Assembly: GCA_021613535.1 (NCBI GenBank)
Contig: CP075494.1
Span: 12,276,001 to 12,340,000, forward strand
Direction of reading: 5' to 3'
DNA length: 64,000 nucleotides
Origin: Adineta vaga
Taxonomy: Eukaryota; Animalia; Rotifera
The translations under genes and the position numbers were made by a program. This document shows, piece by piece, positions 55,976 to 61,289 of the stretch. How positions within the stretch are numbered: the first letter of the stretch is position 1; every line of letters begins with the position of its first letter. The notes beneath the pieces were generated by a model. It worked only from the letters and a program-made list of their open reading frames with translations, was not told the origin of the DNA and did not search any database.

Positions 55976-57141
55976 ATGTTCTTTACACGTTGTTTATATA
56001 AAATAGCTGAAAACGAGCTTGGTCGTCATTTAAATTTACCGTTTATTGATAAACTTCGTATTTATGTTCGTGGTGGTCGTGGTGGAAATGGTCTGAAGAA
56101 ATACGGTGGTATTGGTGGACAAGGTGGAAATGTTCTAATACAAGGTAAACGTCATATGACATTGAAAAATGTCTATGAAAAGAATTTGTTAAAACGTTAT
56201 ATTGCACCTGATGGTGAAAACAGTCATAAAACATGTTTGAATGCTAAAGCAGGTGAAAATTTAACAATTCATGTACCACTCGGTATACAAATTTTACGGG
56301 ATAATGGAGAATTAATTGATGAAATTAACGATATTGATGATGAATGTATTGTGGCACATGGTGGTGCTGGTGGAAGTTATAAGACGTTCTTTGAAGGTGT
56401 ACCTGGTGAAGCGACAATAGTCAATTTAGATCTAAAATTATTAGCTGATGTCGGGTAAATTAATTAGAGAAGATCGATAAATTTTCTTAAATAATTTATT
56501 TTTTTTATTGTAGTTTTGTTGGCTATCCAAATGCTGGTAAATCGACTCTTCTCTCTATGCTTTCTCGTACACGACCAGCAATATCACCTGTTCCATTTAC
56601 TACTCTTCATCCACAAATAGGCACTGTTGTGTTCGATGATGGTCGTTCATTTACTATTGCTGATCTGCCCGGTCTAATTGAAGGATCACATATTAAAATG
56701 GGACTTGGTTCTCGTTTTCTGAAACATACACTTCGCTCGAAAATTCTTCTCTTTGTTATTGATATCAATGGCTTTCAATTAGAACTTCGTTCACCATTAC
56801 GTTCAGCATTTGATTCGATTGTTTTCTTAACTAAAGAACTTGAATTATATGAACCATCTCTCCTTCATAAACCTGCCATACTTGCGATAAATAAAATCGA
56901 TCAATTAGAAGATCAAACCAAATTAAAGGAATTCTATCATTCATTAGATAATTATCAAGAAATTTTGAAGAATGAATATGAAGAAAAATGGTGTCCGAAA
57001 CAATTCTTTCGTTTTGAACATATTGTTGAAATAGCTGGTAAACATGGTACCAATTGTGATCATTTATGCTCTATTCTAAGACATTCACTTGATGAACAAT
57101 CTGATCGAGAAAGAAGAACTAGTAAATTTTCATCATTCTAG
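55976..57141 (+). CDS. GTPBP10: Mitochondrial Obg-family GTPase GTPBP10
   Basis: FIDKLRIYVRGGRGG glycine-rich Obg fold; DLKLLADVG|FVGYPNAGKST; PFTT; DLPGLIEG; NKID. One intron at 56456-56513. Confidence 0.92.
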
Positions 57142-57160
57142 ATAAAAAAAAAGAAAACGA

Positions 57161-58579
57161 ATGTCGGATGATTTTATCTATTGTCGAAATCAAAATGATT
57201 TTGTCGATTCAATTCTTGATGCAGTCGAACAACATGACGGTCTTTTACTTGATGAATTATTAAATGTATCACGTATGTATAAAATCGATGACTTAGATTA
57301 TGATGATACGAATGAACCTAATCTTGATCAACAATTAAACAATGATCTAGAACTTCTTTGGAAACTATTAAGTCGATATCATTGGTTTGTTTGTCGATAT
57401 TTATATCTCAATGATATTGATCGTGCATTTCGACATCAATCAAAGAAATTCTCTTGTCTAATGGGAATATTGAATTATTATTCAAATCGATCAACAGATG
57501 ATGATCATAATAATGATCCAATTCATTCGACAACAAATGATGATGATCCATCATGGTTATTACCAGTTTTTAATCGTCATGCACATGAATTACGTCTTCT
57601 TGCTTTACTTGGCAATGACGAAGGAAATAATGATGATAATGATACTTTCGAAACTTCAAATTCAACAAGTACAATTCAAACATGTAATACACAATTATTA
57701 CAAGCAAATAATGTTTTACAAAGATTTCCATCAACAATTAAATTAAAAAAAGTCGGTATTTTTATTATTGTTAATCAAATGTTAAAAACGTATTATGCTT
57801 TACATAAATTTAATCTATGTACTTATTTCATTTCCAAAGGTAAAGATCAATTTAATTTGAAATTCTATTCTTATTCTTGTATTTCAGCTGAACGTCCATT
57901 GAAACAATACATGCAAGAAGAAAATACTCAACAAATACATCGATATTCATCTTATGTTCTTAGTTATCGTTATTTTCTTGGTAAACATCTTATTCTTAAA
58001 CATGATTATAGTTCAGCAATTGCTCATTTTGATTACGTTTTCACAAATTGTCTCAATTCAAATAGAAGTGGAAGTATTAAAAATAAACAACAATCATTAT
58101 TATATTTAGTTGCATTAAAAATGCTTCATGGTTCAACACCAAATATGGATATTTTAGAAAAATATGAATTAAATGAATTAATTGATTTGATTAAACCAAT
58201 TCGTGCTGGTTCATTGAGATTATTTCGTGAAAAACTTCATGAATATGAACAATTTCTATTTGATACTGGTCTATTTTTTTTAATTGAAAATTTCAAATTA
58301 TTAGCAATAAGAAATTTATTTCATACATATGTTTATCATATTGATCATCAACAAACAAACAAAATTCCATTTGAACCTACATTATTAAGTTTATTAAATT
58401 TTGATCTTGATCAAGAAAATTACTTTACAGTTAATGAACTTATTGACATATTAAATAGTATGATAGAAAAAGGCATGATTAAAGGTTATATTTCATATAC
58501 AGTTCGAACATTAGTTGTTAGTAAAAAAGATCCATTTCCAAGACAATTTCATTTTTCGTCTTTACTAAATTCATCGTAA
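57161..58579 (+). CDS. PCID2: PCI domain-containing protein 2 (TREX-2 / CSN12-like)
   Basis: KKVGIFIIVNQMLKTY; YRYFLGK; winged-helix end MIEKGMIKGYISY...LVVSKKDPFP. Probably contains a stopless 48-nt intron at 57840-57887. Confidence 0.85.
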   Translation: MSDDFIYCRNQNDFVDSILDAVEQHDGLLLDELLNVSRMYKIDDLDYDDTNEPNLDQQLNNDLELLWKLLSRYHWFVCRYLYLNDIDRAFRHQSKKFSCLMGILNYYSNRSTDDDHNNDPIHSTTNDDDPSWLLPVFNRHAHELRLLALLGNDEGNNDDNDTFETSNSTSTIQTCNTQLLQANNVLQRFPSTIKLKKVGIFIIVNQMLKTYYALHKFNLCTYFISKGKDQFNLKFYSYSCISAERPLKQYMQEENTQQIHRYSSYVLSYRYFLGKHLILKHDYSSAIAHFDYVFTNCLNSNRSGSIKNKQQSLLYLVALKMLHGSTPNMDILEKYELNELIDLIKPIRAGSLRLFREKLHEYEQFLFDTGLFFLIENFKLLAIRNLFHTYVYHIDHQQTNKIPFEPTLLSLLNFDLDQENYFTVNELIDILNSMIEKGMIKGYISYTVRTLVVSKKDPFPRQFHFSSLLNSS

Positions 58580-58624
58580 ATCGTTAGATTCATGTATAGA
58601 AAATGTATTCTAGATTATTGAATC

Positions 58625-59189
58625 ATGTTTCATCCAAATTCACCTGGATCTGCATCACATTCCGATGGAGATCATATGATGCCTTCAAATTTCTTTCCAA
58701 GACGTGAAAGAACACTTTCACAGTAAAATTTTTCGATCTATTCTTGACAGATTCATTTTATTTTATCGTAATTTAGATGCGAACGTGTATTACAAAGCCC
58801 ATCTTATGAAGGTAAAATACATGAATTTTGCCGAGAAAAAGGCTATGGTCACATTCAACCAAAAGACAATCCAAGTGAACTTATTTTCGTTCACGTTTCG
58901 GAGTAAATATTCCTTTCTTTCTCTTTCTCGACATATCTTTCTTCATTTCTCTAGTATCGAAGATGATTATGTTCCAAAGAAAGGTGATATTGTGACATTT
59001 AAAAAGATGTTAATGCCGCCTAAGAATGAAAAATCGATGGCAGTACATATAAAACTTCTTCATTTAGCTGAAGGTGTTAAACATGAATCATGGGAAGAAG
59101 CAGTTGAACATGATATGGAAAATCGACGGCCATCACGATCGAATGAAACAATGGAAAATCATCAAAATGTTGTTTCTCATGCTGATTAG
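58625..59189 (+). CDS. CARHSP1: Cold-shock domain protein CARHSP1/CSDC2 (PIPPin)-like
   Basis: Spliced product: LPRRERTLS...YEGKIHEFCREKGYGHI...IFVHVSDIEDDYVPKKGDIVTF...PPKNEKSMAVH...HESW. Confidence 0.88.
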
Positions 59190-59379
59190 TTTGATTCTAA
59201 ATGGCTTTTCAAAAAACAAACTCCAGTGATATTACCTTCTCTTTTTCTTTTTTTCTTATCGTCATAACAAACTAAATGTTGAATTTTTTTTTATTAAAAA
59301 AAAAGAGAAAAATCTGATACAGACATACTTTATTTTTCACTGTGATGTATTTTGTCCTTCTTTTCTTCTAGATCTTACG

Positions 59380-61289
59380 ATGGTGAGAATAGGATTAAAG
59401 AAGAATAGTTTGAAGATTTTTAAGTCATTTTGTAGGGAAATCAAGGTTCTGGCGGTCATAAACGCGGTGATGGAAGTGGAGAGAAAGAAGTAAGAAAATA
59501 TTTCTATTGAAGAGAATGAAAGTGAATGTTATTTGTTTTGTAGAAAAAGAAATATGAACCACCAATTCCAACTCGAATTGGCAAACGGAAAAAGAATACC
59601 AAAGGTCCTGAAGCAGCAAATAAACTACCACAAGTTTTACCCTATACACGTTGTCGATTGAAACAATTACGATATGAACGTATAAAGGATTATTTATTAT
59701 TAGAAGAAGAATTTATTAAAAATCAAGAACGTTTAAAACCACAAGAAGATCGTCATGAAGTAGAAAAATTTATTTATTCGGAAATGAAACATTCTAAAAC
59801 GAATATTTCTTTTTCTAGGAAGAACGTTCAAAAGTCGATGATCTTCGGTATGAATAATTTTTTATTTAGACTCAAAGAACATTCACATTTTTCTAATTGC
59901 AGAGGATCACCTATGGCTGTTGGTACTTTAGAAGAAATCATTGATGATAATCATGCAATTGTTTCGACATCTGTTGGCTCAGAACACTATGTGACAATAA
60001 TGTCATTTGTTGATAAAGATCAACTTGAACCAGGATGTACCGTCCTATTAAATCATAAAGTTCGATCTTTAGTTTATTTTCTGATCTTAGAGAAGAAATC
60101 ATTTTTTTAGGTCCATGCTGTAATTGGCGTTTTAGGTGATGATGTTGATCCCATGGTTGCAGTGATGAAACTTGAAAAAGCACCAAAAGAAACGTAAGAT
60201 TAGTGTATAAGAATACATATTCTTCATTTTCGTGTTCTTCTAGATACGCAGATATCGGTGGATTGACAACACAAATTCAAGAGATTAAAGTAATAAATGA
60301 TTGGTTGATTGATAGAAATAACGAGATCAAATTTTGTTCTTTTTTTTTCAAAAGGAAGCTGTTGAATTACCATTAACTCATCCGGAATATTATGAAGAGA
60401 TGGGTATTAAACCACCTAAAGGTGTTATTCTTTATGGTCAACCAGGCACAGGTAAAACTCTTTTGGCTAAAGCTGTCGCCAATCAAACATCAGCAACATT
60501 TTTACGTGTTGTTGGTTCTGAATTAATTCAAAAATATTTGGTAATTGAATTTTGATTGATTTGAAAGATTCTTATCTTCAAATTTAGGGTGATGGTCCAA
60601 AACTTGTTCGTGAATTATTTCGTGTCGCAGAAGAATATGCACCTGCTATTGTTTTTATCGATGAAATCGATGCAGTTGGAACAAAACGGTAGAGATTCTA
60701 TTTTTATTAAATTTAAAAGTATAATTTTAAATGAATATATTTAGTTATGATTCAAATTCTGGTGGTGAACGTGAAATTCAACGAACTATGTTAGAATTGT
60801 TAAATCAACTCGATGGATTTGATTCACGTGGTGATGTAAAAGTAAGGCGAACGATTAATTATGTACATTTATTTTTACTTGGAATAAACTAGGTTATTAT
60901 GGCAACCAATCGAATAGACAGTCTTGATCCAGCTTTGATTCGTCCAGGTCGTATTGATCGAAAAATCGAATTTCCATTACCTGATGAAAAAACGCGTCGA
61001 ATGATCTTCAAAATCCATACAGGTCGTATGACACTTGCTGCTGATGTTAATTTAGAAGAATTAATCATGGCTAAAGATGATCTTAGTGGTGCAGATATCA
61101 AAGTATGTTAAATGGATGAATTGATGTTCGAAGAGAAAGATAATTTTGTTCTAGGCTATCTGTACAGAATCAGGTTTAATGGCATTACGTGAACGGCGAA
61201 TGAAAGTCACTAATGAAGATTTTCGAAAGAGTAAAGAAACTGTGCTTTATCGAAAGAATCAAGGTACACCAGAAGGCTTATATTTATAA
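59380..61289 (+). CDS. PSMC1: 26S proteasome AAA-ATPase subunit Rpt2 / S4
   Basis: ATG-only first coding exon, then GNQGSGG; [11 protein letters not shown]; [12 protein letters not shown]; GQPGTGKT; FIDEIDAVG; C-terminus PEGLYL; stop 61287-61289. Confidence 0.97.

Follow-up and report, generated by a model that had tools for sequence, protein, structure and literature searches.

A conserved four-gene cluster of the bdelloid rotifer Adineta vaga, a probable operon resolved by spliced-leader trans-splicing

Introduction

The operons of tunicates (Ciona intestinalis, Oikopleura dioica) bring together housekeeping genes that are unrelated and arranged head to tail, and the intercistronic region is short or absent. 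A single class of spliced leader (SL) is used, and the poly(A) signal of the upstream gene stands immediately before the acceptor of the downstream gene. The SL2-type operons of Caenorhabditis elegans have an intercistronic region of roughly 100 nt that contains a U-rich element. Here, we describe four consecutive genes of the bdelloid rotifer Adineta vaga, GTPBP10, PCID2, a CARHSP1-like gene (hereafter CARHSP1) and PSMC1/Rpt2, at positions 55976-61289 of a 64,000-nt stretch of the genome (C5:12276001-12340000; hereafter the window). The G+C content of the window is about 30%, and its introns measure 48-60 nt. The four genes probably form an operon whose transcript is resolved by SL trans-splicing.

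At the GTPBP10/PCID2 and PCID2/CARHSP1 junctions, the locus resembles the tunicate operons. Its predicted sites there combine one SL, no intercistronic region and a poly(A)-type hexamer abutting the acceptor. The locus differs from the tunicate operons in phylum and SL sequence, in a CARHSP1/PSMC1 spacer of about 190 bp and in being read mainly from sequence. A further difference is that the acceptor AG belongs to the stop codon of the upstream gene, an arrangement conserved across the whole class. The likeness to C. elegans is confined to the CARHSP1/PSMC1 junction, where a poly(A) signal (ATTAAA, 59293) is followed by about 75 nt of T-rich spacer and an acceptor (AG, 59371). In contrast to C. 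elegans, the first two junctions have no intercistronic region, and a search of the A. vaga genome allowing three mismatches found no specialised SL2.

Among animals closer to rotifers, chaetognaths are grouped with them in Gnathifera, although their SL sequences differ from the bdelloid SL. Operons have been documented in the chaetognath Paraspadella gotoi, where an operon was defined as genes less than 250 bp apart with the SL on at least one of them (PMC12460157, 2025). Rotifers are named in that paper in passing only, with no rotifer operon data.

Results

Gene content and predicted processing sites

The four genes are unrelated housekeeping genes on the same strand, and they follow each other head to tail with stop-to-ATG gaps of 19, 45 and 190 bp (Table 1). 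A 3' untranslated region (UTR) and a promoter together would not fit into the first two gaps. The spliced gene models were searched against databases exon by exon. GTPBP10 is 45-51% identical to its vertebrate counterparts, and exon 3 of CARHSP1 matches the CARHSP1 structure in the PDB (3AQQ, E 1e-11). GTPBP10 and PCID2 are single-copy in the A. vaga genome, where the other matches are distant paralogues on C4 only.

The 456-aa PCID2 protein corresponds to a 472-codon open reading frame (ORF) minus an in-frame intron. This sole intron of PCID2 (57840-57887) has 48 nt and no stop, so the reading frame stays open with the intron retained (472 aa) or spliced out (456 aa). In PSMC1, the ATG (59380-59382) makes up the entire first coding exon, and an intron (59383-59435) comes directly after it. 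The resulting ATG/GTGAGA (a slash marks an observed or predicted splice point throughout) is kept in all bdelloid lineages compared. With trans-splicing, the PSMC1 exon between acceptor and donor would have 11 nt in A. vaga (window 59372-59435), and the corresponding exon in the environmental contig L043 (5620-5680) would have just 3 nt (AG/ATG/GT).

We considered whether the four ORFs could be one multidomain gene. This was rejected, as the ORFs are divided by stop codons in every lineage and their orthologues elsewhere are individual genes. Public gene models of Rotaria and A. steineri fuse GTPBP10 with PCID2 (783-828 aa) or PCID2 with the cold-shock-domain gene CARHSP1 (610 aa). These fused models (P0004, P0005, P0069, P0089 and P0105) are probably errors of annotation that arose from the very short gaps.

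Predicted acceptors with the core TTCTAG/AT stand shortly before each of the four ATGs (Table 1). The copy upstream of GTPBP10 is probably the outron trans-splice site of this gene. The window contains 15 copies of the octamer TTCTAGAT, threefold more than expected (4.8 +/- 2.3), and none of 100 shuffles reached this number. By direct reading of the four genes, AT follows all four start-proximal acceptors, whereas it follows 2 of the 15 cis-intron acceptors. Downstream of PSMC1, a canonical AATAAA is likely the 3' end of the four-gene unit. The next gene encodes a patatin (ATG at 62698) and lies about 1.4 kb off PSMC1.

An earlier interpretation of this DNA, made from its letters alone (the sequence-only reading), had named the same four genes with the same gaps and the same head-to-tail layout, and all of these were exact when the coordinates were read again. 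It had also described pyrimidine-rich TTCTAG acceptors before each ATG. Their positions and the TTCTAG core hold, but the pyrimidine richness does not extend to the CARHSP1 acceptor, which has 47% pyrimidines across the 15 nt before the AG and offers the core TTCTAG/AT only. The statement that the first gap is free of AATAAA is correct for the gap itself, but the hexamer AGTAAA is present just upstream, in the last codons of GTPBP10. In the third gap, the layout of ATTAAA, T-rich stretch and acceptor was found as described. The reading had compared this layout with nematode operon spacers, and the label suits the CARHSP1/PSMC1 spacer. It does not suit the first two junctions, which are tunicate-like, and there is no sign of an SL2.

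Table 1. Positions of genes and of observed or predicted sequence elements in the A. vaga window.
Feature	Position	Strand	Remarks
GTPBP10 acceptor TTCTAGAT (predicted)	55964-55971 (AG ends 55969)	+	6 nt before ATG
GTPBP10, mitochondrial Obg-type GTPase	exons 55976-56454, 56514-57141	+	368 aa; stop TAG 57139-57141; Pfam GTP1_OBG, MMR_HSR1
AGTAAA, poly(A)-type hexamer (putative function)	57121-57126	+	in last GTPBP10 codons, 14 nt before acceptor AG
Pyrimidine tract + TAG	57127-57141 (AG ends 57141)	+	predicted PCID2 trans-splice acceptor and GTPBP10 stop codon in one; 19 nt before ATG
PCID2	57161-58579; exons 57161-57839, 57888-58579	+	ATG 57161, stop TAA ends 58579; NCBI model I4U23_025889, 456 aa; PCID2 orthologues; weak Pfam PCI match
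CARHSP1 acceptor TTCTAGAT (predicted)	58608-58615 (AG ends 58613)	+	34 nt past PCID2 stop, 11 nt before ATG
CARHSP1-like cold-shock-domain protein	58625-59189; exons 58625-58722, 58777-58902, 58955-59189	+	ATG 58625, stop TAG ends 59189; 152 aa; Pfam CSD; bdelloid orthologues
ATTAAA, predicted CARHSP1 poly(A) signal	59293-59298	+	conserved AATGTTGAA block and T run precede
T-rich spacer ending in TTCTTCTAG, predicted PSMC1 acceptor	59299-59371	+	AG ends 59371, 8 nt before ATG
26S proteasome ATPase Rpt2/PSMC1	59380-61289	+	ATG 59380; Pfam Prot_ATP_ID_OB_C, AAA
Canonical AATAAA	61378-61383	+	about 90 nt past PSMC1 stop; read from sequence

Conservation across bdelloids

The gene order abhydrolase (opposite strand, minus), F-box, GTPBP10, PCID2, CARHSP1, PSMC1 and patatin is common to A. 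vaga and seven other bdelloid lineages. The comparison set consisted of Adineta steineri (L031-L033), Rotaria socialis (L026-L030) and the environmental sequences L023, L024/L025, L034, L040 and L043. PCID2 identity to A. vaga ranges from 62% to 76% among these lineages. The GTPBP10-PCID2 gap varies from 13 to 21 bp (31 in L034, measured to the real stop), the PCID2-CARHSP1 gap from 27 to 69 bp and the CARHSP1-PSMC1 gap from 156 to 260 bp.

The predicted acceptors are conserved across bdelloids where the neighbouring sequence is not. Before the GTPBP10 ATG, (T)nTAG/AT is found at a distance of 0-11 nt in six of the seven lineages. In the PCID2-CARHSP1 spacer, TTCTAG/AT or TTTTAG/AT is present in all nine sequences, and the rest of the spacer cannot be aligned. 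The PSMC1 ATG has an acceptor 0-9 nt upstream in seven lineages, with a pyrimidine content of 92-100%. In L043, the AG of this acceptor abuts the ATG, and the GT donor comes right after the ATG. The whole 5' UTR of PSMC1 would therefore have to come from the SL in this lineage. In A. vaga, L031 and L034, the 3' UTR of CARHSP1 has a conserved block about 70-80 nt before the PSMC1 acceptor, made up of AATGTYTRA, a T run and ATTAAA. The block of L043 is a variant ending in ATTAAG.

The GTPBP10 stop codon is TAG after a pyrimidine tract in six of the seven lineages, whereas PCID2 and CARHSP1 end in TAA, TGA or TAG, depending on the lineage. In L034, a TAA that arose five codons (15 nt) upstream ends GTPBP10, and yet the tttcatcattctAG/at downstream of it, now non-coding, does not differ from A. 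vaga. The tract and TAG have thus stayed unchanged after losing their coding role, which argues that TAG is kept as an acceptor and not merely as a stop. The place of the A. vaga AGTAAA is occupied by AATAAA in L024, ATTAAA in L031, AGTAAA in L027 and the weaker AATATA in L034.

RNA contigs from relatives

The environmental contig L035 (JGI 3300002344; 1970 nt, also designated L041) shares 96% identity with the genomic contig L023. It is without the PCID2 intron and without both CARHSP1 introns, and the absence of all three cis-introns indicates that it is derived from RNA. The first 7 nt of L035 are CCAAGAG, the 3' end of the SL, and ATTAAA...ATG of PCID2 follows. The genomic contig has CGTTGTAG/ATTAAA at this place. 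The point of divergence shows that the SL was joined exactly after the AG of the GTPBP10 stop codon. The chance of finding a given 7-mer at a given place is about 1 in 16,000.

Beyond PCID2, L035 runs on through the stop codon, a 51-nt spacer with TTCTTCTAG/AT, the whole spliced CARHSP1 and about 100 nt of 3' UTR. If PCID2 ended near the acceptor, the mature PCID2 and CARHSP1 mRNAs would overlap by only a few nt. The most likely source of L035 is therefore RNA that spans the junction. Another contig, L036 (Logan assembly, SRR5248463), shares 99.8% identity with L035 across 1832 nt. It is possibly from the same sample and was not counted as independent.

A spliced contig with CARHSP1 only, L039, begins G/ATAAAACC...ATG, 1 nt before the expected first base after the acceptor (AT). 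This start is suggestive of SL addition at the CARHSP1 acceptor. We also scanned metagenomes with a pattern across the junction of CARHSP1 exons 1 and 2, and the scan returned the RNA contig already known and two genomic contigs from lineages in which this intron was lost.

Spliced-leader genes of A. vaga

SL trans-splicing was described for bdelloids in 2005 (Pouchkina-Stantcheva and Tunnacliffe, as cited in PMC3795323 and PMC1925144). The rotifer SL given in Table 1 of PMC3795323 reads GGCTTATTACAACTTACCAAGAG. The bdelloid SL has a length of 23 nt and ends in ...ACTTACCAAGAG. The A. vaga genome carries it as TGCTTATTACAACTTACCAAGAG/GTAAAT, that is, ...CCAAGAG/GTAAAT. We found 42 copies of the SL RNA gene within one mismatch and about 62 within three mismatches, all of one family. 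The three-mismatch search recovered single-base variants of this family only, and nothing points to a specialised SL2.

The SL genes often occur in head-to-head pairs about 155 bp apart. Clusters of such pairs lie at C5:9884352-9925973 and C5:10912927-10934591, and also at L001:1380-1700. The minor SL variants have A at SL position 9, A at position 12, or the donor GTAT in place of GTAA.

The ohnologous locus on C2

The ohnologous locus L022 (C2:5247000-5256999) retains the CARHSP1-PSMC1 pair, with amino-acid identities of 86% and 97%. Its spacer has a layout like that on C5, with AATAAA, a T-rich stretch and CTCTAG/AT. TAF8 stands upstream of the pair on C2, in place of GTPBP10 and PCID2. TAF8 and the spliced CARHSP1 copy are found on one RNA contig in three runs (L037, L044 and L045). 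We considered L044 as RNA evidence for the CARHSP1-PSMC1 junction and rejected it, because its 3' end is about 230 nt past the stop of the CARHSP1 copy and has no convincing alignment to the acceptor region of the PSMC1 copy.

Discussion

We interpret GTPBP10, PCID2, CARHSP1 and PSMC1 as an operon resolved by SL trans-splicing, and we consider this interpretation probable. A single transcription unit would start in the region of about 700 bp between the F-box gene and GTPBP10. The polycistronic pre-mRNA would be cut to single-gene mRNAs by 3'-end formation of the upstream gene coupled to trans-splicing, and the 23-nt SL would be spliced onto TTCTAG/AT just before each ATG. At the GTPBP10/PCID2 junction, the GTPBP10 stop TAG would serve as the acceptor AG, and the poly(A)-type hexamer would be located in the last GTPBP10 codons. 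At the CARHSP1/PSMC1 junction, the poly(A) signal would be followed by the T-rich spacer of about 75 nt and then by the acceptor.

The SL joining at PCID2 and the presence of PCID2 and CARHSP1 on one RNA contig were observed in a relative, and we infer that the same happens in A. vaga. GTPBP10 and PSMC1 would be on the same precursor, with GTPBP10 co-transcribed with PCID2 and CARHSP1 with PSMC1. The coupling of 3'-end formation with trans-splicing is likewise proposed.

The strongest alternative is a compact genome without an operon, which we consider unlikely. Each gene would then have its own promoter within the upstream gene or the spacer, SL addition would trim a short outron, and the two-gene contigs would be read-through products or assembly merges. 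Several observations weigh in this direction and against the operon interpretation. The SL is found on most bdelloid mRNAs, clustered or not (more than half irrespective of operons, in work cited in PMC1925144), so SL addition alone is no proof of co-transcription. The flanking F-box and patatin genes, 0.2-2 kb away, are syntenic as well. As synteny reaches past the tight cluster, conserved linkage alone is not operon-specific. The RNA evidence at this locus comes from relatives of A. vaga only, the SL remnant in L035 has just 7 nt and belongs to another species, and overlapping transcripts could, in principle, have been merged into a two-gene contig during assembly. Among the searched contigs, no spliced RNA joins GTPBP10 to PCID2 or CARHSP1 to PSMC1. 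The search for spliced GTPBP10 transcripts returned exon-2 ORFs from genomic contigs only, in collections that do hold CARHSP1 transcripts, which hints at unequal RNA levels. Separate promoters fit PSMC1 best, since its 190-bp spacer could house one and a highly expressed housekeeping gene might need one.

However, separate promoters for PCID2 and CARHSP1 would have to sit within coding exons. The contig L035 is also difficult to explain in this way. It is SL-capped at PCID2 and continuous through CARHSP1, although the separate mature mRNAs should overlap by only a few nt if PCID2 ends near the acceptor. Furthermore, contigs joining TAF8 to the CARHSP1 copy recur in three runs.

A second alternative is a stable, unprocessed polycistronic mRNA of PCID2 and CARHSP1 or of more genes. 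Its downstream genes would be translated by reinitiation or leaky scanning, and TTCTAG would not be used as an acceptor. L035 and L036 are in line with such a molecule, being fully cis-spliced and SL-capped at PCID2 and yet carrying CARHSP1. Nevertheless, the acceptor motif before CARHSP1 is kept in all nine sequences whereas the other spacer sequence is not, a spliced CARHSP1-only contig (L039) starts at this acceptor, and the PCID2 acceptor is demonstrably used in L035. We regard this explanation as very unlikely. The least credible proposal is that TCTAGA(T) is a transcription initiator or another DNA-level motif near start codons and no splice acceptor, because, despite its palindromic core, its enrichment in the window and its frequent position just before ATGs, those of non-clustered genes included, the SL junction of L035 falls immediately after the AG of the motif and the same octamer is an ordinary cis-intron acceptor in PSMC1 (ending at 60243).

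Returning to the operon interpretation, the sequence-only reading had proposed a polycistronic unit resolved by trans-splicing. This proposal is partly supported, by the SL genes, by the conserved acceptors and, in a relative, by the SL at the PCID2 acceptor and the RNA contig spanning PCID2 and CARHSP1, and its remaining parts are inferred. Its statement that SL trans-splicing has been reported in bdelloids agrees with the published work and with the roughly 62 SL genes found here. The comparison of synteny and spacing that it proposed shows the four-gene order and the tight gaps in Adineta, in Rotaria and in five environmental lineages. It had further described operons as poorly known in this lineage, in agreement with a 2021 methods paper according to which neither operons nor polycistronic mRNAs had been reported in rotifers (PMC7986045). 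We found no report of a rotifer operon in the searched literature.

If the interpretation is correct, the locus would be the first case of operon organisation documented for Rotifera, and this phylum would join the few animal phyla with operons. It would also become testable whether operons trace to a common ancestor of rotifers and chaetognaths in Gnathifera. We lean towards a wider view in which single-SL operons are general and ancient in bdelloid genomes. They would be older than the split between Adinetidae and Philodinidae, the CARHSP1-PSMC1 pair would be older than the bdelloid genome duplication, and the stop codon and final codons of an upstream gene could contain trans-splice acceptors and poly(A) signals. 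A stop codon that doubles as a trans-splice acceptor, and that is selected even after its coding role was lost in one lineage, would be a case of overlapping codes. The operon would bear on how bdelloid genomes remain compact. A conserved operon also matters for annotation, because the public Rotaria and A. steineri models fuse these genes.

Other loci in the window

A second operon-like run is located on the minus strand at 9900-13255. An EME1/MUS81-like gene (12455-13255) leads the run, the gene of a PHOSPHO-type phosphatase (11565-12284; Pfam Put_Phosphatase, 1e-61) comes next, and the third gene is ClpP-like, with a short first exon that begins at about 11524. The gaps in this run are about 170 and 41 nt. 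The motif TCTTCTAG is 8 nt before the phosphatase ATG, and TTCTAG/AT is 32 nt past the phosphatase stop.

Genes resembling adhesion G-protein-coupled receptors, with a GPS motif and 7tm_2, form a run on the minus strand (37534-48812) at 37534-39258, 43664-45442 and 47508-48812. A rhodopsin-type G-protein-coupled receptor gene on the plus strand (6426-7424) has TTCTAG/AT 34 nt before its ATG.

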